A DNA stretch of 64,000 bases from assembly GCF_006345805.1 (NCBI RefSeq), contig NC_042998.1, positions 207,018,001-207,082,000 on the forward strand, written 5' to 3'. The DNA is from Octopus sinensis. Taxonomy: Eukaryota. Below, one piece after another: positions 3,401-55,752 of this stretch (position 1 is its first letter; the number at the start of each line of letters is the position of its first letter). Made by a program: the position numbers and the translations under genes. The notes below the pieces were generated by a model. It saw nothing but the letters and a program-made list of their open reading frames with translations. It made no database searches and was not told the DNA's origin.

Positions 3401-5068
3401 GTCTCCAGCTGGCTATCCGATACGGATCTTTGTTTGAAAATATAAGGACACAGACGTCTTAAACTGGGGCTGCTTTGTTATGTTGGCAAACAATCTTTAT
3501 TACAAAAGTAAATCTATTCACATCACCAGCTTTCCTGAGAAAATATGAAGGTCAAATGAAAATAATCAATACTTCTGTTTATACAAGCAATTAAAAAGCA
3601 AAAACAAAAAAACATTCTTTTTTTTCATTTGTTTCTTTCTTCAGCCTGTCAGTTGCTGTCATCGTCTGGCTTATCTATGACAGTAATTGATTAGGGTGTA
3701 TACAGTACAGTACAATGAGTTTATACACATCACACCAGCTGTCCCACTTTCCCCGTCTCCTTAAGCTGGCTGTTTGTCACCCCCTATACTGGTCTCTGCT
3801 AAATCGGTGAGTTTGTCTCTGGTTTTATTTTTAGTTTTTTTTCATCCTGATCAAATATGAAATATGCTGACTTGGTTTCTCCTCTCTCTCTCTCTCTGCT
3901 ATCAGACATAGGTATATAATGACCTATATACATTGTTTATACATTGTATATAAACTTCATGAAATGAAATCTCTTTTTCTACTTACAATATAAACCATTA
4001 CATTTTTCCTAATTCTCTTCTTTCTCTCCCATCTAACAACACATAAGGTAGTGTTTCTTTTTAAGTTCTGGTGCCCCCCCCCCCTGGACAATATGTAATC
4101 TGTTGGTTATGAGTAGTTCCACTTGATCTGATCAACAGAACAGCCTGTTCATGGACTTAATGTGTAAGTGGCTGAGCGCTCCACAGACAATCTTTTTCTT
4201 TTTCTTTCTACTTGTTTCAGTCATTTGACTGCAGCCATGCTGGAGCACCACCTTTAGTCGAACAAATTGACCCCAGACTTATTCTTAGTAAGGCTGGTAT
4301 TTATTCTATCGGTCTCTTTTGCCAAACTGCTAAGTTACGGGGATGTAAACACACCAAGTAATGTTAGGGGGAGACAAACACAGACACATCATCATCATCG
4401 TTTAACGTCTGTTTTCCATGCTAGCACGGGTTGGACAGTTCGACTGGGGCCTGAGAAGCCAGGAGGCTGCACCAAGCTCCAGTCTAATCTGGCAGTGTTT
4501 CTACAGCTGGATGCCCTTCCTAACGCCAACCACTCCATGAGTGTAGTGGATGTTTTTTACGTGCCAGAGGGACCTGGCAAACGGCTACGATTGGTTGGTG
4601 CTTTTACGTGTCACTTACACGGAGGCCAGTCAGGCGACGCTGGCATCTGCCACATTCGGACGGTGCTTTTTACGTGTCACCAGCACGAGTATCTTATCTA
4701 CTATATATATGTATATATACACATACATACATACATATACAAAGGGCTTCTTCCAGTTTCCGTCTACCAAATCCACTCACAAGGCTTCGATCGGCCCCAG
4801 GCTATAGTAGAAGACACTTGCCCGAGGTGCCACGCAGTGAGACTGAACCCAGGACCATGTGGTTGGTAAGCAAGCTTCTTACCACACAGTCACGCCTGCG
4901 CCTACATGTATACTTTTAATGTAGCTCTCAGGGAGATTCAATATGACATGACTGGCCCTTTGAAATACAGGTAGAACTTATTTTTGTGAGGGCATAACAC
5001 GCTGCTGGAAAATGACCTTACGATTGTTTGCTGAATACTCTTACCACTAAGCCACACAATTTTGCTTT

Positions 5069-6246: not shown

Positions 6247-7066
6247 TCATCATGTTATGTCTGCTTTCCCATGCTGGCATGGGTTGGATGACAGTGTCTT
6301 GACAACATTTTGCAGGTCTTACATCATCTCCTGATGTACAACAGCAGTGGAGTCTGCCTCTTTGTTGGTGTCTTATCTCTTCCTCTTTCTTCTTTTACTT
6401 GTTTCAGTCAGTAGACTGCGACCATGCTGGGGCACTGCCTTGAAGAACTTTAGTCAAATGAATCGACTCTGGTCCTTATTTTTTCAGCCTGGTGCTTATT
6501 CTGATGCTGAAGTGCTAAGTTAGGGGGATATAAACACACCAACACTGGTTGTCAAGTGGTGGTGGAGAACACACACACACACACACACAGGACTAGCTTC
6601 TTCCAGTCTTTGGTTGACCTGAGGCTATAATAATAGAAGACAGTTGCCCAAGGAGGGGGTGCCCCACAGTGGGACGAGTTGGGTTTTGCAGCTGAATTGC
6701 CCTTTCTTTTGCCAACCAACTTTACTGCACGGATTGTTTGCCCTTTATTGTGTCCCCCTAAACTGGGCATTGCCTGCTTTAGTTTGTTATTTATAGAGCA
6801 TGAAAATAAAATTATTTATTGTAATAACTGTTGTGTGCATATTATATCTTTTTACTTGTTTTAAGCATTAGACTGCGGCCATGCTGGGGCACCACCTTTA
6901 AGAATTCTTGTCGTCAAATGAAATCAACCCCAGTCCCCTCTTTTCTAAAAAAAAATCCGGGTACTTATTCTATCAGTCCCTTTTGCCAAACTCTCTCTCT
7001 CTCTTTTACTTGTTTCAGTCATTTGACTGTGGCCATGCTGGAGCACCACCTTTAAAACAATGTGTG

Positions 7067-7186
7067 ACGCTTACTGCACCTAGGTTTCCCAAGCGGTCAC
7101 CCATCTAAGTACTAATTAGGCTCGACGTTGCTTAACTTTGGTGATCGGAGGAGAACCGGGGCTTTCAACGTGATATGGCCGTTAAA
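7067..7186 (-). pseudogene. 5S rRNA copy (probable retro-pseudogene)
   Basis: The minus strand reads ACGGCCATATCACGTTGAAAGCCCCGGTTCTCCTCCGATCACCAAAGTTAAGCAACGTCGAGCCTAATTAGTACTTAGATGGGTGACCGCTTGGGAAACCTAGGTGCAGTAAGCGT, a near full-length metazoan 5S with box A and box C. The first ~4 nt do not pair with the 3' end of helix I. Confidence 0.9.
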
Positions 7187-7240
7187 AACTGCTCAGTTAT
7201 TGTTTTTCTTTTAATTAAAAAAATTTTTTTTTTATTTCAG

Positions 7241-7355
7241 CCGGAAGGTTTATTTGTAGAATGGAAAGCTGAAGAAGTGCCTTCTTCTGACGAACACGAT
7301 TGGGCTGTGGTTGGTAATGCTGTTGGTTACAAATTAGACAGGCAGTCTGAATCAG
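7241..7355 (+). CDS. TBC1D15: TBC1D15-like exon (first recognised in window; PEGLFVEW...DRQSES)
   Basis: Acceptor ttatttcag at 7232-7240; donor GTAAAG at 7356; 115 nt, phase 0 to 1; EHDWAVVGNAV resembles the EWDMVNTV segment of human TBC1D15. Confidence 0.8.
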
Positions 7356-10133: not shown

Positions 10134-10746
10134 CAGGGTGTTAAAAAAATCTCTCCACAGTATTTTATTGCAAAATAAATATTTATAAGATGGTATAAAG
10201 ACTACAAAAGAATATATTAGACTTTACAAGACTTTAAAAAACTTTATAAGAGGTGCTGAAAGTGTCGTCCTTCATTTTCGATACATAAAATTTAATTTCT
10301 CTTTTACTGTCGTGTGAGCACTTCCTGGGTTGATCTCCGTTTCCTGTGACAATTTGCGTAGGGACTTTGATTGGCTTGCCAACAGTTTATCAGAAACATT
10401 GGAGAGTGTTTCGTCTGAAAGAACAGTAGGCCTACCACTTCTTGCTGCATCTTCCACTGAGCCTCCTGTGTTTCTAAATTTTCTTATCAAATCCCTGAAC
10501 AGAGTGTCACGATGTGGAACAACAGTATTTGGAAAGGTTTCACTGAACTTCTGTTTCACAGTATCTGTGTAATTGGTTCCAGCTCCAAACACCCATTCAA
10601 CTAAAAATGTACGTCCTTCAATGGTTGGCATGTCGACACGCTGAAGAGTACACAATCACTGACACCCGGTCACCCATGCAGTGATAGCCATGTTGCGCAT
10701 GTGCAGGATCATAAAAAATTCACTGTGGAGAGACTTTTTGAACCTG
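10134..10746 (-). mobile_element. Internally deleted Tc1/mariner (rosa/maT-like) element retaining the N-terminal HTH
   Basis: TA at 10132-10133 and 10747-10748; imperfect ~28-bp TIRs (CAGGGTGTTAAAAAAATCTCTCCACAGT). ORF 10272-10655(-) has KF..TG.SV.D..RSGRP and KSLRKLSQE HTH-type motifs but no catalytic domain. Confidence 0.85.
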
Positions 10747-15400: not shown

Positions 15401-16015
15401 CCCTTTAGTATTTAAACCGGCTATATCCGGCCAAAATATTTAATCTGTTTTACATTGCCAGCACCGCCCCGAATGGCCTCCGTGCTGGTGGCACGTAAAA
15501 GCACCATCCATTCGTGTCCGTTGCCAGCCTCGCCTGGCCCCTGTGCCGGTAGCACGTAGCACCATCCATTCGTGGCAGTTGCCAGCCTTGCCTGGCCCCC
15601 GTGCCGGTGGCACGTAAAAGCACCATCCGTTCGTGACTTTTGCCAGCTCCGTCTGGCACCTGTGCAGGTGGCACGTAAAAAGCACCCACTACACTCACGG
15701 AGTGGTTGGCATTAGGAAGGGCATCCAGCCGTAGAAACACTGCCAGATCAGACTGGGCCTGATGCAGCCTTCTGGCTTCACAGATCCTAGTTGAACCATC
15801 CAACCCATGCTAGCATGGAAAGCGGACGCTAAATGATGATGATGATGATGTTCAAACTGACCAGATCCAGGCTCTCACACCTACCCTACAATGTTATTCT
15901 ACATTAAGTAATTACACCATCAAGATCTTGAGGACATGAGATAATGCATGATTAAATCAAATCAATGGGAATCAATAGGTATTATGTTTGATTGAATAAT
16001 CTGAACACTAAAGGG
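15401..16015. mobile_element. piggyBac-type MITE interrupted by an RTE 3' fragment (~15445-15850)
   Basis: TTAA at 15397-15400 and 16016-16019; TIRs CCCTTTAGT / ACTAAAGGG. Confidence 0.8.
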
Positions 16016-16419
16016 TTAAGCCCCACTTTTCCATGCTTTTGTGGGTCAGATGGAATTCATTGAGGCAAATTTCCTACAGCCGGATGCCCTCCCTGTGCCC
16101 AACTTTTACCTGCTTTTTCCCCCAGATTGGAAATGAATGACACACATTTACACCAGTGGTTCTCAACCCCTTTTTACCTCTGAACCCCTTTGATTACTGT
16201 TGTATTTTGGTGGACCCCTATAACCATTCAATGCTTAAAAATGAGTTTTATAGACACTTCTTTTAACATTCCTGTTTTGCTTTTCACAAATTAACGTGTG
16301 TAGTTTGAACTATGTAAAATGTTAGTGAAAGAAACCTCGCTGTTTCTGCATGTAAAGCAAAATTTGTTCCTTTACCCATGGTGTACTGTTGTCGATCCCC
16401 AATTTGCTATTTTTCTTAT

Positions 16420-17170
16420 GTCATCATCATCATCATCGTCGTTTAATGTCCATTTTCCATGCCGGCATGGGTTGGATGGTTTGACTGAGGTCTGGAGACC
16501 CAGTGGCTGCACCGGCCTCCAATCTATTCTGGCAAGGTTTCTACAGCTGGATGCCCTTCCTAACGCCAACCACTTTGAGAGTGTAGTGGGTGCTTTTACA
16601 TGCCACTGGTACGGGAGCCAGTCAGCAGTCCTGGTGACAATCACGCTTGGATGGGGCTTTTTACATACCACAGGCACAAGTGCCAATCAGGCAGTACTGT
16701 CATTGGCCACATCAGCAATTTTGATTTCACTTGCCTCAAAAGGTCTTCATAAGCAAAGTTTATTGTCCAATGAATGAGGGGTATCCATAATTGGGCTGGT
16801 TATACACCACTGGCATAGGCCACAAGTTATGGTCTCACTTGGCTTGCCGGGTCTTCTTAAGCAAAGCATATTTCCAAAGGTCTCGGTCACTAGTAATTGT
16901 TTCGGTGAGGCCTAATATTCGAAGGTTATGCTTCACCACCTCATCGCAGGTCTTTGTGGGTCTACTTCTTCCACAGGTTCCTTCAGCTGCTTGGGTGTGT
17001 CACTTTTTCAGACAGCTATCCTCATCCATTCGCAACACATGACCATACTAGCGCAGTCATCTCTCTTGCACACCACATCTGATGCCTCTTAAGTCCAACT
17101 TTTCTCCAAAAATCTTATCTGGATCCTAGTTGAGAACTACCGGTTTACAGCATGCTTAACAAGACCCATT
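16420..17170 (-). mobile_element. 5'-truncated RTE-clade LINE: decayed ORF C-terminus, 3' UTR and (GAT)n tail
   Basis: Hand translation of ~17130-16835(-): EKLDLRGIRCGVQER*LR*YGHVLRMDEDSCLKK*...GRSRPTKTCDEVVKHNLRILGLTETITSDRDLWKYALLKKTRQAK*. This is the RTE signature RRLRWYGHV.RM...GRP.K.W; a 3' UTR and (GAT)n tail follow. Confidence 0.85.
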
Positions 17171-18111: not shown

Positions 18112-18275
18112 GCGCAGGAGTGGCTGTGTGGTTAGTAGCTTGTCTACCAACCGCATGGTTCCGGGTTCAGTCCCACTGCGTGGCACCTTGGGTAAGTGTC
18201 TTCTGCTATAGCCTCGGGCCGACCAAAGCCTTGTGAGTGGATTTGGTAGACGGAAACTGAAAGAAGCCCGTCGTA

Positions 18276-18331
<56 letters not shown>

Positions 18332-18535
18332 TGTGTATATATTTGTGTGTCTGTGTTTGTCCCCTAGCATTGCTTGACAACCAATGCTGGTGTGTCAAAG
18401 ATGCAAAAGAGACCGATAGAAAAAGTACTGGGCTTACAAAAGAATAAGTCCCGGGGTCGAGTTGCTCGACTAAAAAGGCGGTGCTCCAGCATGGCCACAG
18501 TCAAATGACTGAAACAAGTAAAAGAGTAAAGAGTA
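18112..18535 (+). mobile_element. SINE family 1 copy
   Basis: Full-length match with a long (TA)n linker. Confidence 0.9.
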
Positions 18536-18872
18536 AGTGTTGTACATGTAAACCTAAAGACTGAATCTCCAAGAAGTCGACAGTTATAGTTTCTTATATT
18601 AGTACCAAGTCTTTTGGTTTGTAGAGTTGTTGGTGTGTCATACAGTAACCCCCTCACCATGTTGATTCCTCCATGGTGTTGTTTTGCATGTATAATTGTT
18701 TCGGTCATTTGACTGGCCATGCTGGAGCACCGCCTTTGGTCGAGCAAATCGACTCCAGGACTTATTCTTTGTAAGCCTAGTACTTATTGAATCGGTCTCT
18801 TTTGCTGAACCACTAAGCTATGGGGATGTAAACGCACTGGCATTCGTTGTCAAGCGATGTTGCTGAGAGGAC

Positions 18873-18933
<61 letters not shown>

Positions 18934-20089
18934 GGGGAGTTCATGAAAAAAAAGACGAAGACAGGTAGTGTACAAAACAAACAGATGTATTAGTATAACG
19001 CTCAGGAATAGAAAAAAGTCTTTTACGTTTCGAGCCTACGCTCTTCTACAGAAAGGGACACAGAAAAAAACTAGGAGAGAAACAAGGGGTGAAAAAAATG
19101 TGTGTAGTGGCTAACGATCTATCATGGCGACTGACTCGGCAGAAGGGTCACACAGGAGAGTGAAGAAGTAGGAGAGATAAAGTAAAGATGACCCCCAATA
19201 CGAAGGTGCATGTGTGTATAAGAGAGTATGTATGTGTGTGTGAAAGGGGGCTGGTGGTATGGACGTGTGCGTGTATGTATAGGTGTGAAAATGTGGGGAT
19301 GGGAATTGGGTAGTGCTGGTGTATATACACATACATACACTCACAGGCACACATATACATAAAGGGTTTCTTTCAGTTTCCGTCTACCAAATCCACTCAG
19401 AAGGCTTTGGTTACCGCGAGGTTATAGTAGAAGACACTTGCCCAAGGTGTCATGCAGTGGGACTGAACCAAGGAACCATGTAGTTGGTAAGCAAGCTCCT
19501 TACCACAGAGCCACTCCTGCACCTGTAAGCCAAAAATGATGTTAAAAAATATGGCTGTGTGGTAAGTAGCTTGCTAACCAACCACATGGTTCCAGGTTCA
19601 GTCCCACTGCGTGGCATCTTGGGCAAGTGTCTTCTGCTATAGTCCCGGGCCGACCAATGCCTTGTGAGTGGATTTGGTAGACGGAAACTGAAAGAAGCCT
19701 GTCGTATATCTGTATCTATATATAAGTGTGTGTGTCTGTGTTTGTCCCCCTAGCATTGCTCGACTAAAGGCGGTGCTCCAGCATGGCCGCAGTCAAATGA
19801 CTGAAACAAGTAAAAGAGTACTGTTTCTCCATCACGGATTTTTTCATCCGTCATGGGGTGTTTTGGAACATAACACCTGTGATAGTCGAGGGTTTATTGT
19901 AATTTCATTTAGTCCAAATATGGTACTGGCTGATACTATCGAGCTGCGAGAGACACAGTTTAGTCGTCTCCCCTATCCTCATTGTTTCTGATTGACTCAA
20001 ATGAAGTACTACTCCTCCATTATGATTGACTGAGTAACAGTGAGCAGGGTTTCCATGTCTAAAACCAATTGCTCAAACCATTCCACATA

Positions 20090-21038: not shown

Positions 21039-24000
21039 GTATATTGTTTGTCCTTTTTCTTTTTTTAACCTTAGGTTATTATGAGATTTTTGATGTATCT
21101 CTTTTTTTTTCTTTCTTTTCTTCTCGTTAAAAGAACCGTTTAAGACGACCTTTTATTCAATTCTTAATTTTTTTAGTATCCGAAACGATTTATATCGAGT
21201 AAGTTGGTAAGTAGTGTTTTAAGAATTGCTAGTTTTATTTTAGTTCAAATGGTTAGTGTCGGGGGAAGCAAAAGGAGAGGAAGGATGGAATCGGACGGGG
21301 TTTCCTCTTGTAGTTTGTAAATGCTAGTGTTGTTGGTTGTAGGCACTTATTCACTGCCTTTCTCACACCTAGAGCAACAATAACGGGAGTGTCTATAATT
21401 TGGTGGGGAACAAATATCTCAAGGGACTTTGTTCTTAGAGCACAAATTTCTCAGTTTTCTTCTTGACATTTTTATTCTTTCACTGATACACACAGGAGTG
21501 GTTGTGTGGTAAGTAGCTTGCTTACCAACTACATGGTTCTGGTTTCAGTCCCACTGTGTGGCACCTTGGGCCGACCAAAGCTTTCTGAGTGGATTTGGTA
21601 GATGGAAACTGAAAGAGGCTCGTCGTATGTTTATATATGTATGTTTGTGTGTGTGTTTGTCCTCCCAACATCACTAAACAACCGATGCTGGTGCGTTTAC
21701 ATCCCCATAACTTAGTGGTTCGGAAAAAGGGACCAATAGAATAAGTACTAAGCTTACAAAGAATTAGTCCTGGGGTTGATTTGCTTTAGCATGGCCGCAG
21801 TCAAATGCCTGAAACAAGTAAAAGAATAAAACAATACATCAGTGAAAGGCACACACACACACATACAGTGGCATGCACGCACACACACATGCACACAGGG
21901 CTTTGCACAATTTCTGTCTACCAAATTCCACTTACAAGCTATTGGTTAATCCAAGGCTATGCATAGTAGAAGACGCTAACTCAAGATTCTGCACACAGGG
22001 TTTGACCCTGGAACCACGTTGTTTCAAAGCAAACCGCTTAACCACGCAGCCATAAATCACTTAATATCATTCACCATTCTTAAAGTTCCTTCCAGCCAGG
22101 GCTTAAACCCAGTTTCCATAGTGATGGAATGAGATGACTACTGCCTCTGGATAGGGTGCTAGTCTCACACGCCACTTTCTCTTTCAGCCGAACAACTGGT
22201 ACCTTTTCCTCATACTAGGGGTAAAAGTTTACTGCTATCATTCATGCCAAAATGCCCGCAATGGGTACGATTTCAACGTCTATAAGTTAGGGGTGCCAGT
22301 GCCACTGGACTAGCTTCCATGCCAGTGGCACGTAAAATGCACCATCTGAGCGTGGTCGGTGCCAGTGGCACGTAAAAAGCACCATTCAAGCGTGGTTGAT
22401 TCCATGTAAAACGCACCCACTACACTCTCGGAGTGGTTGGTGTTAGGAAGGGCATCCAGCTGTAAAAATTTTACCAGATAAGACTGGAGACCAGTGCAGC
22501 CTTCTGGCTTGCCAGTCCTTAGTCAAACCGTCCAAACCATGCCAGCATGTAAAGCAGACATTAAACGATGATGATGGCATGTTATTCTTCTGCCCTACAT
22601 TTGGCATTTGAAACACATCTTCCAAGTATCGGATGTTACGTCAAAAGATTTTAAATAGTTTGTTTGTATTCCAAAGTCAGTGTTGGTGTTCTCTTGTTGG
22701 TGCCTGTCTTTTCTTTTTTTTGTTGTTGTGTAAATATATTTTTTAACTTCTTGGCTTACATAGAGACCTCTATAATCAGTACGTTTTCACTTAAGACTGG
22801 GGAAAAAAAAAGTGAAAAGGGAATGGTTGAATGTGCACAATTCCAGCCACAATAGAGGCAGGCAGACATGTGGAGATAATTTCAAACTTGTTCCATTTTA
22901 AATGTTTTATGGAAATCACGTGAATGCATGAGAGAAAAAGAAACCCCTTGTTTTCTTTTATGTATCAATATAGTGTTCCTTGTTTTTTTTTTGAAATAGT
23001 GAACAATGTATCCTTTCTTTATTGAATTCCCTTCTTTTCCGCAAGAACGGTAACTGTAGTTTGTTTACAAAGTCGTGTCTGTAGATGCTTGCATTTTTAA
23101 TGATGTCAGAAAGTCGTGTCTGTAGATGCTTGCATTTTTAATGATGTCAGAAAATCTGGTGGCACTGATCCTCAAAGATTCATTCCCCCCCCACCCCTCT
23201 AGTTGTGTTGTGTTCTTCATGCATGGTTCTTCATTTTGTCCATGTTGATTGGTGATTAAATTAATACTTTTTAAATTTATTTATATATACAGAAATAAAG
23301 TTTTTTTATTATTCACAAATGCGTGATAATGCTAATTAATAGCTTGAACAGGATAAATTCTCCATACATTGCAGAAAAATGTGTTACTGGCCAGCCATGA
23401 GACTTGAACTCACATCCCTGTGATTATGCGTCAAGTGCTTTACCATTAAGCTAAACTGCCCAGTAACAAATCCTTCTGTAATTTTAGAACTTATAAATTT
23501 AGCTTCATAAGACGCTAACATCATCATCATCGTTTAACATCCGCTTTCCATGCTATCATGGGTTGGACGTTTTTGACTGAGGGCTGGTGAACCAGACGGC
23601 TGCACCAGGCTCCAATCTTGATCTGGCAGAGTTTCTACAGCCAGATGCCCTTCCTAACGCCAACCACTCCGAGAGTATAGTGGGTGCTTTTATGTGCCAC
23701 TGGCACGGGGGCTAGTCAGGTGGTACTGGCAACGACCTTGCTCGAATCTTTTTACACATGTCACTGGCTTGAATGGTGTCTTTTACTTGCCACAGGCATG
23801 GAAGCCAGTTAGAATAAGTACTGGGCTTACAAAGAATAAGACCCGGGGTCGATTTGCTCAACTAAAGGCGGTGCTCCAGCATGGCCGCAGTCAAATGACT
23901 GAAACAAGAGAAAAGAGAAAAAATATATATATATTTTTTTTTTTTGCAAACAGTTAAAGGTAGACCTTCCTAATATCCTAGGTTTCAGTATTTGGTGAAA

Positions 24001-26673: not shown

Positions 26674-26923
26674 TTAAGCTGACCCTTAATTTACAAGGGT
26701 ATAAAACAAATATTTGATACAAATTGTGATTTGTGTATGATCTGTATCAAAGAATGAAACAGGTTCTGTATCAAAGTAATTTCAATGAAATTTTTTTCTG
26801 TTATTTCGGTCAAAATAATAGTGTCTCCTCTTTTACTCTTTCGCTTGTTTCAGTCATTTGACTGTGGCCATGCTGGAGCACCGCCTTTAAAAAAATGATT
26901 GAGTGTAAATGCAAAATAAGTTG

Positions 26924-26996
26924 TGAGCTCACCAGGATTCGAACCTGCAATCTTCCGATCTGTAGTCAGACGCGTTATCCATTGCGCCACGATCCG
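26924..26996 (-). pseudogene. tRNA-Arg(ACG)-derived pseudogene; anticodon now ACA
   Basis: 73 nt: CGGATCG TG GCGC AATGGATAA CGCG TCTGA CTACAGA TCGGA AGATT GCAGG TTCGAAT CCTGG TGAGCTC A. The D and anticodon arms match eukaryotic tRNA-Arg(ACG). The acceptor stem has 2 mismatches and the T stem 1. Confidence 0.8.
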
Positions 26997-27469
26997 TAGC
27001 CTGTTAATTTTTCCAGCAATTTCATTCACTAGAAAAATTTCGGCACAAATGGGTTAAACAGTTTCATCATAAAATATGTGACTTGTTGATTGTATAGACA
27101 ACATGATTGATATTCAGGAAGGTCTGCCTGTCTTTCTTTTCCCTTACTGCCAAACCCCCTCCACCCCTCGTTGCCCTTTCTGTCTTTGTCCATCGTATGG
27201 CCTTACTTTATCATCTCTCCCTCTCCCTCTCTCACCTTGTCCCTTCATCATTATCCTCTTAACGTCCACTTTCCCATGCTTGCATGGGTCAGACGGAATT
27301 TGCTGAGACAGGTCATGGTCTTCTAGACCTGGATGCCCTTCCTGTCTCCACCTGTTTCCCCATGGCCGGACATGTTTTTCACACAAGACTGGAAATAAAT
27401 GACCTCACCTGTACGACGATATTCATCTACAAGTATCACCTGAATGTCAAGACTGAGGTACACATGCAC

Positions 27470-27740
27470 CACAATGCACACACAACACACACACACTCAA
27501 CACACACAACATACACAACACACATACACACACAACATACACGCACAAACACAACATACACACACACACACACACACCATACACAACACACACACACAAC
27601 ATACACACAACATACACAAACACAACATACACAAACACACACACACACACACAACATACACACACAACATACACACACAACATACACAAACACAACATAC
27701 ACACACACACAACATACACAACACACACACACACACAGTT
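27470..27740. repeat. (CA)-rich compound microsatellite (CACAACATACA units)
   Basis: Direct inspection. Confidence 0.9.
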
Positions 27741-28307
27741 TTGTCTACCACATCCACTCAGAGGATTCTGTCACATATTCTCTGTCATAAGGGGCCCTTT
27801 CTCCCTTTTTGCCATCTCTGTCTTTCTCATGCCCTTCCCTTGTCACAACCTCTCCCCCCCTCTTTTCTCTCTCTCAGACCTCCTGTATATTGTTAAACCT
27901 GTAATATATATCCCATCTCATACACACATTTATACACACTTCCATGATTTAACCATCAAACCTTGATATGTTTTTGTTTTTTTTGTATTTTTGTATTTTT
28001 TTTTCCCTTGTTTTATTCATGCATGTTGCCTCTCTCTCACATTCTCCTCTTTTAGAACCCCTAATTTTCACCCCATATTTGCCTGTGCATGCTTGCATCA
28101 TTTGATCCCTCCCTTTATTACAATTCATCTTCCAGTCCTATTTCCTTCGTTTTTAACCGTTTCCCCACCATCGCAATAGCTGAGGTTCTGGACCCTTCCC
28201 CCCCCTCTTTTCTCCCAGACTTCTTCAGAAATCAGAGAGAGAAACAACAATTCCTTTTTTTTCATATTTTGTTTTTTGTTGTATTTTTATTTTTACTTTA
28301 TTTAAAT

Positions 28308-30184: not shown

Positions 30185-30272
<88 letters not shown>

Positions 30273-30782
30273 CTATTGAGTCAAGTACGTTAACGCCAAC
30301 ATCAAAGTAAAAATCAAATGGAAATTGAAGTTAAGAAACCTCTGCCGGTGGCATGTAAAAAGCACCGTCCGAACGTGGCAGATGCCAGCACTGCCTGACT
30401 GGTGTCGGTGACACATAAAAGCACCAACCGATTGTGGCCGTTTGCCAGCCTCCTCTGGCTCCCATACCAGTGGGACGTAAAAAGCACCCACTACACTTTT
30501 GGAGTGGTTGGCGTTAGGAAGGGCATCCAGCTACAGAAACTCTGCCAGATCAAGATTGAAGCCTGGTGCAGCCATCTGGTTCGCCAGTCTTCAGTCAAAT
30601 CGTCCAACCCATGCCAGCATGGAAAGCGGATGTTAAACGATGATGATAATATAATTTAATGTATACAGTATTAAAATGAGCCACTAAAGGTTTCTTGCTA
30701 TGAAAACCTGTTGATAGCAAATTGTTATAACCTGTCTTGTGTCTCTGTGCTCATGGTTCTGTTTGAAAGCAAGTTATAAATC

Positions 30783-31175: not shown

Positions 31176-32733
31176 ATACACACGCACATATATATATATT
31201 AATTCAGCATTTTTCACTTGCTGCCGACTGAAACTGTGCTTGCGTGGTGAATTTTGATAAAAAATTTAATATATAATGATGAGACGTGTGTTATTCTGTC
31301 TCTAAATTATATGTTAGTGTTTTGGCGTAGCCACTGATGAGAACTTCGCCTAGCAAATTATTTTATTTGCTAATTAGAGGTATGGCTGTAAAAAAACAAG
31401 GTAGAAGTTTTTATTTTTGATTCCCTTCAAAATTGCGCTTAAATGTGGATTTGGATGTCTTGACTGCTCCTTCTAGCATGTAAGGCTGCCTGTTAAGGGT
31501 CGCCTCTTTTGCGTTTATTTGTACACTAATTTTATATATATACAAACACACACACACACAGGTGGATAGTTAGGTTGGCCATTTAGGATTTTTGTTTGAA
31601 TTATCTTCATCATCATCATTTAACATCCGTTTTCCATGCTGGCATGGTTGGATGGTTTAACACGGTGGTGAGCTGGCAGAATCGTTAGCACGCTAGGCAA
31701 AAAGCTTAGCGGTATTTTGTCTGCCGTTACGTTCTGAGTTCAAATTCCGCCGAGGTCGACTTTGGCTTTCATCCTTTCAGGGTCAATTAAATAAGTACAA
31801 GTTACACACTGGGGTCGATATAATCGACTTAATCCATTTGTCTGTCCTTGTTTGTCCTCTCTGTGTTTAGCCCCTTGTGGGTAGTAAAGAAATAGGTTTG
31901 ACAAGGTGGCAAACCAGAGATCTGCACCAAACACCAATAGTCTGTTTTGGCATGGTCTCTACAGCTCAATGCCCTTCCTAATGCCAACCACTTTGCAATC
32001 AATAAACAGATATTTATTTCTTTGAAGATCAATAATGAAACAATAGCTTTTAGTGTGCCCTGATTGATGAAGCTCTTGTATGAAGTCTTGAAGTTCTATT
32101 CAGGTCTTTGGAAATGGTCTGGTGGAGTCAAAAGGCATTGGAATTATTATATCTTGGCCACTATTTTTGTGTGAAATGTTAAAAAGTGTTGCTTAGATTG
32201 GCTTTAAAATGTTGTCCTGCTGCAGTTAGAACCCATATATCCATTTTCGTACACTGGCGGTGTGTTGTCATAATCTTGGTAGATGTTGGTGCCAGCAGAT
32301 TCAAGGTTTCGCTGACCGGCACTGGAACCCAACAATCCACCATTTAATATCTTAGAACAATGAAGCCTGCAATGGGCCAACATTTATACATCTGTACCTT
32401 ATTCTGTTGGCATATAATTCAGAATTTCTTACTATGGAAACTTGTAGAAGCTTTAGCTATAACTAGTAAACAGTCTGGCTTGGAAAAGGAATATACTTTT
32501 GTCTTTGTGTGTGTGTATGTGTACAGTGATGTGTTCTGTGTTTACTCAAGTGCAGTGCAATTTCAAACATAATGTGACCCCTTTTTGTATCTTGAAAATT
32601 TATCTGTAGTATAATAATGGCTACCGATGTTAACCCTGGTATTTTTGGTGATTTATTTTAAATTTCTGGCATCATGTACGAGTAAATACACTACATATAA
32701 ACACACATGGGCATACATAGACTTGTGTGTGTG

Positions 32734-32770
<37 letters not shown>

Positions 32771-34030
32771 GCACACATACATACATACATACACAATGTC
32801 TCATGAATTTAGAATTCTAAGAAAAATAATGCCTTTGCAGAATCTACTCTCAATATACAAAGCAGTCAACCAAATATAAATTAAAGATGATAAATGCCTA
32901 TCATAATAAATGTATATACACAAACGTGCACACTTATATATTTTAGTGCTTTGAATTTTCTAGCATTTTGCGAATAACATCAGAAATAACAGTCCTGTGT
33001 GCAAGACCTGGTTTTCTCCACGGCCATTTTACTTAATTTTTTTTTTACAACATTATTATTCCAAATTCTTGGGACCAGTGTGTGTATGTATATACACATA
33101 TATATGACACACACACACACACACATATAACTCTTAAACTAACTCCCTCCAAGTGTTTTCCAATGTTTTTTTTTGGCATGCTTTATTTTAACTTTGCTCA
33201 TGTTTTGCATTTGTATACCCCCCCTCCTGTATAATTAACCCCCTAACTACCCCCTGTTTGGTGTAATTGTAGTAGTTTATGCTGGCATGGTTTTCTTTTA
33301 ATTGCTTTTTTCTTATATTTTTCTCATTACTGCTTTTATATTTTTATTTCAATGTAATTTGTTTTTTTGTTCTTTTTTTATTTTTCAAAGATTTTTGACA
33401 AAATATTTAAAAACAATTTGTTGTTGTTTGAACCATTTTAAAATCTATGTTTGCGTAATTCTAATCTAATTTTTAATTCCTGAATCTTTTATGTGTCTTT
33501 TACCGAGAAATATTTCTTCTACTTGGACTCGATCCTTTCAGCCACTTTCTTCATTGTTATCTCTGCGAGTCAAGAATGTCTCAAGCTCCCCCCCCCCCCG
33601 AAGGGACCTTCTCCATAGTTATTCAGCTGCTAAATTTCTCAGTTCACACCTTACCACCACCACCATCATTTAATGTCCTTTTTCCAATCTGGCATAGGTT
33701 GGACAGTTTGACAGGAGCTGGTAAGCTGGAAGGTTGTACCAGGTTCCAGTAATCTGTTTTGGAATGGTTTCTTAACACCCAACCACCTTTTAACAACCAT
33801 CTGGATGGCATTGAGCAACACCACCCAGAATATACTTTGTGGACTCTCTTGTGACAGATGTGGGCTTTGCAGGTGCTTGCTTAACAACCTGCTCAGATGG
33901 TTTGTTTATAGTGATCAAACATATGCGCTGTACATCATTTCACTCCCCCCATCAAATTGGTGTTACCTGTACAGGTGCACAATATGCCCCTCATCAGATG
34001 TTCAAGTAATTGCAGAGGACCATTGACTGA

Positions 34031-38314: not shown

Positions 38315-38784
38315 TTTGGGAAATTTGATTTAGTATTTCTAAATTGAATTTTTCCCTGTAAGTTTGGAATAATATTCCCTCATTATTATTATTACATATA
38401 CATACATTCATATATATGGATCTCTTCTTGTCTGGGGGTCCCAGATGAACCTACCTCACAACAGGAGACGCAGATGCGGGCAGCGGCATCAAACTCCCTT
38501 GTTGATCAAGTGCCACATATCAGAGGTGGATTCACATATTAGTGTAGCTCATTCAGCGGTGGTGCCCCAGCATGGCCGCGGCCTTCGGGCTAAAACATTT
38601 TTACGGATTTAAGGATTTATATATATATTTCGCTTTTGTATCTGGTTTGCTGACAAAGTAGACTTGAAATGAAATGAAATGAAACCAGAGAAAGAAACGG
38701 GTGTATTTTATTATAAGTTTTCTTGATAGTGTCATGGAAACCCAATATTTGTGTAACTGATGACGTTTTTGTTTGTCTCTCCAG

Positions 38785-48690: not shown

Positions 48691-49744
48691 TATACATTAC
48701 ATATCTATATCAACTTAGCTTTCCCTCGTCTGTTTTACTACAAATAACTCCTTTTCTAATCCAGTTTTTCTTCCAGTGCATCAAGTCCTTATGTAAGGTT
48801 CCTTTAACCCTTTTTATACCATATTTCTATTTCAGTCAATTTTGAAGATGATGAATATTTTAGTAGAGTAACTTTGTCCTTATTCAGTTGGAATTTTAAT
48901 GGAAGGTTTTCATTTCACTCTCCTTAACTCTTTAGTATTTCAACTAACCATATTTGACTCAATGCCAGCACCGCCTTGACCGGCTTCTGTGCCGGTGGCA
49001 CGTGACCTGCTGTGCTTGAGGAGACCTATTGAGTCAAGTACATCAACTTCAAAATAAATATCAAATGGAAATTGTAGTTAAGATACCTGTGCTGGTGGCA
49101 CGTAAGAAGCACCATCCGAATTTGGTCGATGTCAGCGCCGTCTTGACTGGCTTCTGTGCCAGTGGCACGTAAAAAGCACCAACTGATCGTGGCCGCTGCC
49201 AGCCTCCCCTGACACCTGGCTAGTGGCACGTAAAAAGCACCCACTGCACTCACGGAGTGGTTGGCGTTAGGAAGGGCATCCAGCTGTAGAAACACTGCCG
49301 GATCAAATTGGAGCCTGGTGCAGCCTCCTGGCTTCCCAGACCCCGGTTGAACTGTCCAACCCATGCTAGCACGGAAAACGGACGTTAAACGATGATGATG
49401 ATGATTCTGTTTCATGTTAAAACTGACTGTCTGGCCTCTCACACCTACCTGACAATGTCATTCTAAAAATAATCCCATTCTAAAAATAATCTCAAAGCTG
49501 TGAGATAATGCATGATTAATTCAAATTTACGTGAATAAATAAGCATTATTTATTTGGCTGTAATCTGAATGTTAAAGGATTAAAACAAGAAGTTTGAATC
49601 ATAGAACGAAAGGTGGCTGTGGGTGGGTTGCTATCAAAAGGGTTAATTTGTTCGTAGGTTAGGGCCATAAGCCCACAGCCAAGCCCTGTTTGGGTTTATT
49701 GCTTTTGATAAAATGTCTAATTGTGAGTGTCTTCCTTTTTTCAG

Positions 49745-50964: not shown

Positions 50965-51141
50965 TATACAAATATTTTATAATTATTAACATAATTATAA
51001 TTAGAGGTCAGCTAATAGCTTCACCACATACCGAATTTAGAAATAGGAATTTTAACTCCTATTTCAAAATTCGGTATGTGGTGAAGCAATTAGCTGACCC
51101 CTAATTATAATTATGTTTATAATTATAAAATATTTTGTATA
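50965..51141. repeat. Near-perfect hairpin, ~87-bp arms, tiny loop
   Basis: TATACAAATATTTTATAATTA...GAAATAGGAATT, then TT, then AACTCCTATTTC...TAATTATAAAATATTTTGTATA; ~6 differences. Confidence 0.9.
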
Positions 51142-51780
51142 TATATATAATGTGTGTATATATTTGTGTTTCTGTGTGTTTCTATATGTGTGTGTATTTG
51201 TATATAAATGTGTGGATGTACATATGTGTATATATAGATATTCATGTATATGTGTATATATATGCATGTGTGTGTATGTGTGTTTGTGCATGTGTACGTG
51301 TTTCTGTATATATATGAGTGTATATTTGTTTGTATTTGTATATAAATGTGTGGATATACACGTGTGTATATATGGATAGTCCTGTATGTATGTGTGTATA
51401 TTAATGTGTGCATATATATAATGTATATATATATTTGTATGCATATACATACATACATGTGTGTGTTCACAATCCACAGTTCACTTTATGGTTGGACTGA
51501 ATTCACAAACCTTCTGTCTTCCTCATTGGTAAACTCTCTACTAAATATAAATAAAACCTTGTCCAGCTCCGTAAATAAACAACATTGAGAAAAACCTAAG
51601 ACTTCCATAGATTTCATATCTTTTCTAGATGCTTCTGTGTTCCCTAGCCCTTTCCTCTACTCGTCCCTTCTCTCTTCCTCTCCCTGCTAATTTTTTTTTT
51701 GTTTGTTTTCAAGATTTGTGTCTCCAAATTCTAATTCATGCCTAAGCTTATTTAAATATTTTCCTTCGTTTAGAAATTAA

Positions 51781-52237: not shown

Positions 52238-53333
52238 TAAATGGACTTTACCATCATTCCCCGTTCATACTTCCCCAAGTGCTCGCATGTGCGCACACAC
52301 ACCCAACCTTTTTCTACATCCAAGGTGATAATTCCTCGAATGATGTCATAGATTCAAGCAGATGTGGCTGTGTGGTAAAAAGCTTGCTTCCCAATCACAT
52401 GGTTCTGGGTTCAGTCCCACTGTTTGACGCCTTGGGCAAGTGTCTTCTACTATAACCTCGGGCCAACCAAAGCCTTGTGAGTGGATTTAATAGACAGAAA
52501 CTGAAAAGAAGCCCGTTGTGTGTGTCCGTGTGTCCCCATGTTTGCCCCCTCACCATTGCTTGGTTCAGATACTTTACTGCTTCAGTAAACTCTATCTGAC
52601 CCAAACAAGCTTGGAAAAGTGGACATGGAAACAGTCACTGACACACACACACACACACTGGTCATCATTATTGACCCAGTTATTTTGCTACAATTTGATT
52701 TTGTCAAACTAATCTTAATCCCACACTGGTTTACAAGCATCCTCTAGAGGTGCTAAAAAGTATCCCGTCTGGCCTGGCTCTGCATCATTTCAGCCGTAAT
52801 CTCTCTTACACACATATATATAATCTATGAAGATGAAGTCAGGAGGTAGGAAAGGTAAATAGGGGTTTGTTGTTTCCATAATATCTTTATGGGTGTCTCT
52901 TAGGCCTTCTGATTCTGTTTTCTTCTCTGCGTATCCTCCTTGTGCAAATGTTTACTGTTTGTTTCAGTTGCATGGCTAAGTTCAGCGATTTAATCACTTT
53001 GTGAACTGATAGCTGGGTCCTTGCTAAGTGCTTACTGCGGGTTCTGCTTGAGCCTCGAAATCTAATTTTCTTTGTGTGCGTGTGCATGCGTATCTATCTA
53101 TATATATATATAGAGAGAGAGATATCTATAGATATATATCTATAGGGAGCTTGCTTCCTAGCCACATGGTTTCGGGTTCAGTCCCACTACGTGGCACTCT
53201 GGGTAGGTGTCTTCCGCTATAGCCCCGAGCGACCGGAGCTTTGTGATTGAATTCGGTAGGCGGAAGTTACTGCCGTGTGTGTATGTGTGCGTGTAGGTGC
53301 TTGTGCCTCTCCGAAAGAGAGAGAGGGATATAT

Positions 53334-53413
<80 letters not shown>

Positions 53414-54584
53414 TGTATATATATATGAGAGGTATTGGTATCTAGAAGACTCAAAGAGTGATGGGTAACGCTAAGTAAGTACTATGGACAGATGAAGGGA
53501 TATCCATAATATCCCAGAAATAGCTGTAAGACTATTTCATTATAAATGTCCTGAAAACTCCTCACAGCCTTGGCTTTGTTATCCCATTCTGTCTAACACA
53601 CACACATATATATATATATATATGAATGCATGCATGTGTGTATGTATGTATGTTTAAATTTCATGTTAAATTGCTTTTGACAATCAATTTCAGTCCATTT
53701 TCTAAATAATATATATTTTGTAAATTATATTTGATTCAAATTTATTTTACCCACCAAAAAGGGGTTTTTTAGAAAAAATTTTAATTTTGTTGCATTAGGT
53801 TCTAAAGTAAAATTAAAATTGTTTTTCTTTCTGTTAAACCTATTTTGAAAATTTCTTAATAATATTTATTTACCATTCAAGGAACTTAAATCCCCCAAAA
53901 ATTGTGATCCAGTTTCCAGCTAAATTCATCTCGTTTTCCCATATTTTCCCCTCCTATGGCGGAATTCTTTGAATGACTGGCAAAATGCTGAACGGTATTT
54001 CGTCCGTTTTTGCATTTGGCACTCAAATCCCTCTGGTCTCGACTTTGCCTTTCGTCTCTAGCGAGGTCGATAAAATAAGTACCAGCTATGTACTGGGGGG
54101 GGGGGAGTCGATGTAATCGATTATGCCCCTTTTCTGAAATTGCTGTCTTTGGGCCAAAGTATGAAGCCATTATTTATCCCTGTTAATCCTTTGTAAGTCA
54201 AGATTATCATCCACACCCTGCTCCCCACCTCCATCCTATGCAACCGGCTGTTCTCGTTAAATTTATAAAAATTCGTCTAAAATAACGAAGCTGAAACCAT
54301 TAACCCTGGTCTCTTTGTATTATTTTAGACATATTCCCCACCCTTCACTAAAAAAAAAAATAAAAATGATTTAAAAAGATTATTTTAAAAAATTTCCCAT
54401 TCCCGGATAAGAAATGTCTTCTAGATAATCCTTATTTGATTTCTAATTTTTTCTCATTTTCCTCCTCCTCCTTCCCCTCCTCTTCCATTAATTAACTTGC
54501 TGTATCCTTGAGCAAGTGTCTTCATCTTGTGTTGCTCTAGTCTTTGTCACCTGAAAACATGTACCAGCTGCCTGGCCCGTGCAG

Positions 54585-54845: not shown

Positions 54846-55299
54846 ATGCCCTCAATACCCTGTTGGGTGGCTGGAGAGGATATCTACGTCTGTCTGTCTG
54901 TCCAACTATAGAGGTGCCCCAAGCAACTTCAAGACTTAAACACTACCAGGTTCACAAAACGGGGACAGATGCCTCAGTCTGTTTCGCCTCCCTCGTCCTT
55001 AACAATTTAATGCCTTAAACAGCTCTACCCAAGATACATCATCATAGCTTTAGTGTCGCACGTTTCTTATAGTTTGTCCAGCCAAAAGACAAGAATTAGG
55101 TTGCTGCAAAACAACCGTAAATGATAAAATGTTTCTGACTTTTTAAGATTTTCTTTCTAAGCAAACACTGCTGATGCTACAAACACGCAATCAATCCGGA
55201 AATGTCTTGAGACCTGGTTGAACGCCTTCTTGGTTTGTTATTTTAGAATTGTTTATACATACATACATACATGTGTGTGTGTGTGTGTATTTATATATG

Positions 55300-55752
55300 T
55301 GTATATATGTATATGTGTCTGTATATATACACATGTATATGTATATGTGTCTGTATATATACACTTATATATATTCAAATATATGTATATGTGTCTGTAT
55401 ATATACACATGTATATATTCAAATATATGTATATGTGTCTGTATATATACACATGTATATATTCAAATATATGTATATGTGTCTGTATATATATACATGT
55501 ATATATTCAAATATATGTATGTGTGTCTGTATATATACACATGTATATATTCAAATATATGTATATGTGTCTGTGTATATACACATGTATATGTGTCTGT
55601 ATATATACACATGTATATATTCAAATATATGTATATGTGTCTGTGTATATACACATGTATATGTGTCTGTATATATACACATGTATATATTCAAATATAT
55701 GTATGTGTGTCTGTATATATACACATGTATATATTCAAATATATGTATATAT
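55300..55752. repeat. ~44-bp tandem repeat (GTGTCTGTATATATACACATGTATATATTCAAATATATGTATAT) with shorter variants
   Basis: Period 44 between 55391 and 55435; about 10 units. Confidence 0.9.

Follow-up and report, generated by a model that had tools for sequence, protein, structure and literature searches.

A 5S rRNA-derived sequence joined to a SINE tail and inserted as one unit upstream of an octopus coding exon: a candidate chimeric retropseudogene

The stretch of Octopus sinensis DNA analysed here (64 kb in all, hereafter the window) carries, on its minus strand, a sequence derived from 5S rRNA that runs through a short trailer into the terminal module of a SINE. This compound unit lies inside an older SINE, in an intron and close to a conserved coding exon. 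Read along that strand, the 5S part is followed by TCACACATTGTTT(T) (7067..7055) and this in turn by TAAAGGTGGTGCTCCAGCATGGCCACAGTCAAATGACTGAAACAAGTAAAAGAG(AG)n (7054..6993); the junction sequence is GTAAGCGTCACACATTGTTTTAAAGGTGGTGCTCC. An initial annotation, made from the letters of the sequence, had proposed this order; the coordinates and strings agree with it and Rfam recognises the 5S part with 91 bits. Further along the window lies a second element of the same build, headed by a tRNA-like sequence. The features of both elements and of their surroundings are collected in Table 1.

Table 1. Features of the 5S unit, its insertion site and the second element
Feature	Position	Strand	Basis and remarks
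5S rRNA-derived part	7068..7186	-	Rfam; model positions 1-120, full length by the model, decayed
5S transcript 3' trailer, 13 nt, TCACACATTGTTT	7055..7067	-	Sequence; with the T at 7054 gives TTTT
SINE/LINE tail module, TAAAGGTGGTGCTCCAGCATGGCCACAGTCAAATGACTGAAACAAGTAAAAGAG then (AG)n end	6993..7054	-	Repeat matches; two hairpins predicted
Left target-site duplication, 5 bp, AAACT (AGTTT on the element strand)	6988..6992	.	Sequence; AAACT once in the empty L001 site
Right target-site duplication, AAACT	7186..7190	.	Sequence; one-base overlap with Rfam 5S position 1
Host SINE 3' part, older, 5'-truncated, with its own tail of the older GGTGCCCCAGC type	6847..6987	-	Orthologous to L001 ~72-231
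Host SINE 5' remnant, ATAACTGAGCAG on the minus strand	7191..7205	-	Continuous with 6847-6987 minus the insert
Conserved coding exon, 115 nt (PEGLFVEWKAEEVPSSDEHDWAVVGNAVGYKLDRQSES)	7241..7355	+	Acceptor tttcag/CC, donor CAG/GTAAAG; L001 272-386, L003 ~699-813
Second element of the same build	26828..26996	-	Rfam, ARAGORN, sequence
tRNA-like head	26996..26924	-	Rfam tRNA, 35 bits; ARAGORN anticodon ACA
tRNA trailer, 34 nt, ends in T7	26923..26890	-	Sequence; unique
SINE tail of the tRNA element, with the TAAAGG start of the 5S unit's tail	26889..26828	-	Consensus comparison

Relatives of the locus were found through a 79-aa ORF that runs from the 5' end of the 5S part into the adjacent exon (ORFs from Logan assemblies). 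Two ORF matches were obtained in Logan assemblies of other cephalopod sequencing runs, and their contigs were then compared with the window. The comparison involved L001 and L002 (SRR11869391 and SRR11869384), which come from a related octopod, and L003 (ERR3431203), from a more distant species. The peptide of the 115-nt exon is identical in L001, where 9 of 9 nucleotide differences are synonymous, and the differences from L003 number 6, 3 and 16 by codon position; these patterns mark it as a real coding exon that is clearly under purifying selection. No annotated octopus protein with this exon was found in a collection of 5.8 billion proteins (only ORFs on Logan contigs were), nor did the exon give a Pfam match; it may be absent from the annotation of current octopus gene sets. 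The 5S unit is intronic and antisense to the exon. The initial annotation had placed it 55 nt upstream of a coding exon, which was right as to the exon, while the distance has to be corrected, since the gap between 7190 and the exon start at 7241 is 50 nt. The polypyrimidine tract and the splice acceptor are kept, and the insertion was probably neutral for the host gene. Within the polypyrimidine region, at ~7214-7227 (+), the window is also longer than L001 by about 14 bases (TTTTAATTAAAAAA-like), which lie past the host SINE remnant and before the acceptor.

The Rfam model 5S_rRNA matches at 7186..7068 on the minus strand (91 bits, E = 2.8e-18, gathering score 38), and this is the sole 5S match of the 64-kb window even at E <= 1. 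The head is nevertheless decayed: in the Rfam alignment it has five non-canonical pairs, three of them in helix I, and its minimum-energy fold differs from the 5S fold and is as stable as that of a shuffled sequence (z = -0.01). The internal-promoter stretches AAGUUAAGC and UAGUACUUAGAUGGGUGACC (box A and box C) match the Rfam consensus, and at the level of the sequence the promoter regions thus seem to be retained. As to the 5' end, which was first described as clipped by about 4 nt, the first four bases (UUUA) do mismatch the model and are unpaired with the 3' strand of helix I, but Rfam aligns the sequence from position 1 and clipping is not established; these bases could be mutated, non-templated or a substitute for a short truncation. 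At the other end, the normal 3' end of the 5S part carries no T-run. The first T-run comes at positions 10-13 past it, in the 3' flank TCACACATTGTTTT, and this TTTT, a minimal Pol III terminator, directly abuts the tail. The trailer had no other match in the window or in the 100-kb O. vulgaris sample.

A full-length match so far above the gathering score could suggest a dispersed 5S rRNA gene that adjoins a SINE and is, or was until recently, functional. We regard this as next to impossible, given the five non-canonical pairs and the loss of the canonical fold, a normal 3' end that is not followed by a T-run, and the fact that this is a single intronic copy that is absent at the orthologous site described below. 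The empty orthologous site and the broken helices together refute such a gene.

The trailing piece corresponds to the last ~55 nt of a SINE that is more abundant in the window than any other. Within the window, the opening 30 nt of this piece have 12 matches at <= 3 mismatches (0 expected), and its 17-nt core has 20, with 18 more in 100 kb of Octopus vulgaris, a sharing that by itself assigns the window to an octopod. The consensus of 30 copies reads CTCGAC/TAAAGGCGGTGCTCCAGCATGGCCGCAGTCAAATGACTGAAACAAGTAAAAGAGTAA (the slash marks the start of the tail); the tail behind the 5S part differs from it at two CpG sites and in the terminal repeat only, and the assignment of this piece to the terminal module of SINE family 1, made at the outset, holds. 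SINE homology stops exactly 5' of TAAAGG in the 5S unit. The predicted fold of the tail has two hairpins and, after them, a short-repeat end without pairing (-17.8 kcal/mol, z = -3.5, with 0 of 200 shuffles as stable). LINE reverse transcriptases of the 'stringent' kind, such as that of CR1, recognise 3' sites with just this layout, and the tail is a candidate recognition site of an enzyme of this type. The remaining tails sampled (window and 100 kb of O. vulgaris) all have repeat-element sequence upstream, which is SINE body in every case except one (38561), and none of them is preceded by a T-run. Thus, the 5S unit and the tRNA-headed element are not ordinary 5'-truncated SINE copies. At the exception, 38561-38600 (+), the tail core GGTGCCCCAGCATGGCC stands in a different context (…cattcagcggtGGTGCCCCAGCATGGCCgcggccttcgggctaaaaca…), with neither the body nor the end of SINE family 1; it may belong to another element, or to a relative of the partner LINE, that shares the hairpin.

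The host SINE reads ...TTTTGCCAAACT / insert / AAACTGCTCAGTTAT around the unit and is uninterrupted in other copies (...cttttgccaaactgctaagttacg...); likewise, on the minus strand, ...gagcAGTTT / insert / AGTTTggcaaaagggactgatagaataagtac... is continuous in other copies. The initial annotation had read this arrangement as an older host SINE interrupted by a single insertion between AAACT repeats at 6988-6992 and 7186-7190, and had pointed to related octopods as the place to look for an uninterrupted host SINE. The repeats were confirmed in the sequence, and the intact host SINE was indeed found: in L001/L002 the orthologous SINE is uninterrupted (...cttttggcAAACTgctcagttat...) as in the other copies, AAACT occurs once, and both the 5S part and the tail are absent. 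The flanks of the window, joined without 6993-7190, are colinear with L001 across the joint, with 85.7% identity over 420 columns, and L003 has the exon but lacks the host SINE. Since the host SINE is intact in the related octopod, it predates the split of the two species. The 5S part and the tail, jointly absent from that relative where AAACT is found once, entered together after the lineages had separated, and the single AAACT of the empty site also means that the 5-bp duplication is real. The 5S part with its tail is thus a single-unit, lineage-specific insertion into an older host SINE.

Taken strictly, the empty site shows only that both parts postdate the split from the L001 lineage, and T-rich sites can be nicking targets. 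Two separate events after the split might therefore be imagined, a 5S retropseudogene and a severely 5'-truncated, tail-only SINE copy at its T-run, in either order. We consider this very improbable, because one 5-bp duplication brackets the whole unit with no second duplication inside it, because the second insertion would have had to fall exactly at the T-run without a duplication of its own, and because tail-only truncated copies are absent among the 38 tail cores, the two elements described here aside. The second element adds to this argument.

In this second element, the tail is preceded by the trailer CAACTTATTTTGCATTTACACTCAATCATTTTTT and by a head that we take to be a tRNA-Arg(ACG) with CpG decay in its anticodon, in other words probably a decayed tRNA-Arg-ACG. 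The head lacks CCA and the trailer is kept, which points to a precursor-type transcript. In both units the tail thus sets in at TAAAGG, a point ~4 nt 5' of the first hairpin (n = 2). If placement were random, at least two of the three small-RNA matches of the window would be located at most 40 nt upstream of a tail on the same strand with a probability of 1.6e-4, and the same joint at an unrelated tRNA argues against two independent events at the 5S locus. The tRNA element itself is only a candidate for insertion as a single unit: the candidates TAACAG and CCGAAAT in its flanks are no better than chance as a target-site duplication, shared flank 6-mers and 7-mers being expected by chance in 58% and 22% of shuffles, respectively. 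The window also contains a second tRNA-like match at 23389-23460 (-) (Rfam, 34 bits), not called as a tRNA by ARAGORN, with a T5 14 nt downstream and without a SINE tail; this match may represent either a SINE head or a pseudogene of a tRNA.

No other copy of either head with its trailer (5S or tRNA) was found in the 166 kb sampled, an absence that excludes only families of tens of thousands of copies. The O. vulgaris sample consisted of five 20-kb loci reached through repeat-derived 'hypothetical proteins'; these loci hold 18 tail cores and contain neither a further chimera nor a small-RNA pseudogene. One of them (L007) has a match to the mir-9/mir-79 precursor above the gathering score at 7027-7103, unrelated to the 5S unit. 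Copies were also sought with the antisense ORF that spans tail, trailer and 5S, a search that is insensitive since such ORFs are short: no junction-spanning ORF was found in 5.8 billion proteins or in 1.84 billion representatives, where the matches covered the tail only. The searchable literature yielded no cephalopod 5S SINE. The 5S-tail copy may well be unique.

Several other repeats and repeat artefacts were noted in the window. A high-copy element carries long antisense ORFs with LQLDALPNANHS (4267-4869, 15450-15803, 16319-16777, 27284-27790 and 49026-49442). Similar ORFs figure as 'hypothetical predicted protein' in O. vulgaris GCA_951406725.2 (P0008, P0009, P0012 and P0013), and two O. 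bimaculoides UniProt entries contain them as part of their sequence; such protein entries are probably repeat-derived mis-annotations. The ORF at 10272-10655 (-) matches the helix-turn-helix domain DUF4817 (Pfam E = 1.7e-05); this domain is found at the N-terminus of mariner/Tc1-like transposases, and the ORF is probably a DNA-transposon remnant. Dozens of sub-threshold Rfam miRNA matches (mir-297, mir-466, mir-3149 and others; E <= 1), located at 18260-18940, 30190-30280, 32700-32800, 51000-51480, 53270-53660 and 55250-55750, were rejected as artefacts of TA/TG-type microsatellites.

How, then, did 5S and tail come to be joined? It is possible, albeit rather unlikely, that the unit belongs to a simple SINE family of the SINE3 type, derived from 5S, made of head and tail only and present in several or many copies. 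Its master copy would have this same order of 5S, trailer and tail and would be transcribed by Pol III through the weak T4, and the transcript would be mobilised by the partner LINE. The head does keep both promoter stretches, and the tail module is shared with an abundant SINE. A T4 followed by AAA is a weak, leaky Pol III terminator, and read-through of the T4 of the 5S unit is conceivable. Moreover, the 5S part looks more decayed than the tail (five broken pairs and no 5S fold, against differences from the consensus at two CpG sites only), which would fit a head already past rRNA function before insertion; from this sequence comparison, the head could have evolved as a non-rRNA lineage before it was inserted. 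It is also known that 5S-headed SINEs arose several times (PMC10886601). On the other hand, a terminator stands between promoter and tail, and in the tRNA element it is a T7. Head and tail of SINE3 share one Pol III transcript without a terminator, and the TTTT found here weakens membership in such a family, even if a T4 may leak. In addition, a second copy is absent from the 166 kb and from predicted ORFs, and the searchable literature holds no such family from cephalopods.

Of the two readings put forward in the initial annotation, a template-switch or ligation chimera and a minimal 5S SINE, we favour the chimera because of the T4 terminator at the junction, the tRNA/T7 element with the same joint and the lack of a second copy of the junction. 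The 5S-tail unit is, in our opinion, rather probably a chimeric retropseudogene that arose by template switch or RNA ligation. Primary transcripts of Pol III that have escaped processing are marked by a trailer with oligo-U, and T7 stops Pol III. A polymerase that starts from the 5S or the tRNA promoter would therefore halt before the tail, certainly at the T7 and at least often at the T4. Given that a Pol III terminator precedes the tail in both elements, the joint is best explained as made post-transcription, and this is its most likely origin. The 3' part matches the tail of an abundant SINE of the same genome, as is required of a chimera of the U6/L1 type.

For the formation of such a chimera, the following course may be proposed. 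A LINE-type reverse transcriptase would start target-primed reverse transcription at a plus-strand nick after ...GCCAAACT; the plus-strand primer end ...AAACT-3', followed by (CT)n, fits priming on an (AG)n RNA end. The template would be the RNA of the SINE (or of its partner LINE), recognised via the two-hairpin 3' tail. Once ~55 nt had been copied, just beyond the hairpins, the enzyme might shift to a nascent Pol III transcript at its 3' end; this RNA, made from a 5S gene or pseudogene, would still have had its 13-nt trailer and terminal oligo-U. Alternatively, it might have copied an RNA in which the SINE tail and the 5S transcript were already ligated. The 5S would then be copied to, or nearly to, its 5' end, and the product integrated inside the older intronic SINE with a 5-bp target-site duplication, antisense and at a distance of 50 nt from the acceptor. 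In this course, the joining step (by template switch or ligation) and the identity of the enzyme are inferred. With a Pol III stop between head and tail, the copy can hardly be expected to spread as a SINE, and it was probably inactive from the outset; it has decayed since its insertion and has no evident function. The fixed tail start of the two elements weighs against this reading, as it could stem from a shared DNA ancestor or a module boundary. Other possible reasons for it are a favoured switch point at the border of the structured site, a donor RNA with its end there, or a switch between related chimeras under the guidance of a U-run.

By the current view, a SINE gains its head through the jump of a reverse transcriptase from the tail of a LINE or SINE to a small Pol III RNA, and to our knowledge the raw intermediate of this step has rarely been caught. 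The 5S unit offers a fairly clean snapshot of it, as the joint still bears the trailer and the terminator of the donor transcript and the empty site proves insertion in one step. The kind of event is already known; what is new here is such a chimera in a cephalopod and with a non-L1 hairpin tail. It is tempting to go further and to see in the octopod ~55-nt hairpin tail a promiscuous cassette that captures nascent oligo-U-ended Pol III transcripts (5S, tRNA and possibly others) at one set position, which might be dictated by the end of the donor RNA or by U-runs that guide the switch. We put this forward as a speculation, more doubtful than likely. If true, such a cassette would be the main retro-copying route for small RNAs in octopod genomes and an ongoing source of the new SINE heads behind the large SINE expansions of cephalopods. 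Elements of this build make up two of the three dispersed small-RNA matches in the 166 kb covered. Should such chimeras be frequent genome-wide, the octopus might become a natural system for studying retro-copying by stringent non-L1 LINE enzymes and the birth of SINE families.

Among the closest known counterparts are the mammalian U6/LINE-1 and 5S/LINE-1 chimeric retrocopies, such chimeras being reportedly described by Buzdin et al. In U6 chimeras, the small RNA ends in its own oligo-U, and the truncation points of the LINE-1 part are variable; the two octopus elements share one breakpoint (n = 2). For U6/L1 and 5S/L1 chimeras, template switching or ligation are known as mechanisms, and the LINE-1 part of U6/L1 chimeras is 5'-truncated (bioRxiv 10.1101/2025.02.02.635956). 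The ligation variant depends on RtcB, with template switching as the alternative. Like these chimeras, the octopus 5S unit couples a small Pol III RNA, in sense, with a retroelement 3' end, and the whole was inserted in one event with a target-site duplication. The small RNA of U6 chimeras is likewise full length, and mammalian chimeras do not propagate further. Apart from the host, a cephalopod instead of a mammal, the octopus elements differ in that their 3' partner is a ~55-nt hairpin tail with a short-repeat end and not an L1 3' end with poly(A), in that the breakpoint in the tail is identical in both, and in that their small RNAs are precursors with 13-34-nt trailers. Moreover, human 5S/L1 chimeras are mostly antisense and truncated, whereas the octopus 5S unit is in sense (head relative to tail) and full length.

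Among established SINEs, 5S heads are found in zebrafish SINE3, in Deu-SINEs with a 5S head and in lepidopteran HaSE3 (PMC10886601, PMC4824008). In SINE3 and its kin, as in the octopus unit, a LINE-type tail comes after a head that derives from 5S and contains internal promoter boxes. They are, however, present in many copies and as a rule include a body region, and no terminator separates their head from their tail, whereas the octopus unit has the terminator and was seen as one copy in 166 kb. A template switch has been proposed for the birth of new SINE heads (PMC5729268, PMC4824008, PMC4758252), in particular for PittSINE/TguSINE1 of passerines, where a switch from a CR1-derived SINE tail to a new tRNA head was suggested (PMC5729268). 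The octopus elements resemble PittSINE in combining a hairpin-plus-microsatellite tail and a stringent LINE reverse transcriptase, here the putative one, with a new Pol III head (PMC5729268). PittSINE is a multi-copy family, whereas the octopus units are seen as single copies with a Pol III terminator between head and tail, which should hinder their propagation, unlike that of PittSINE.
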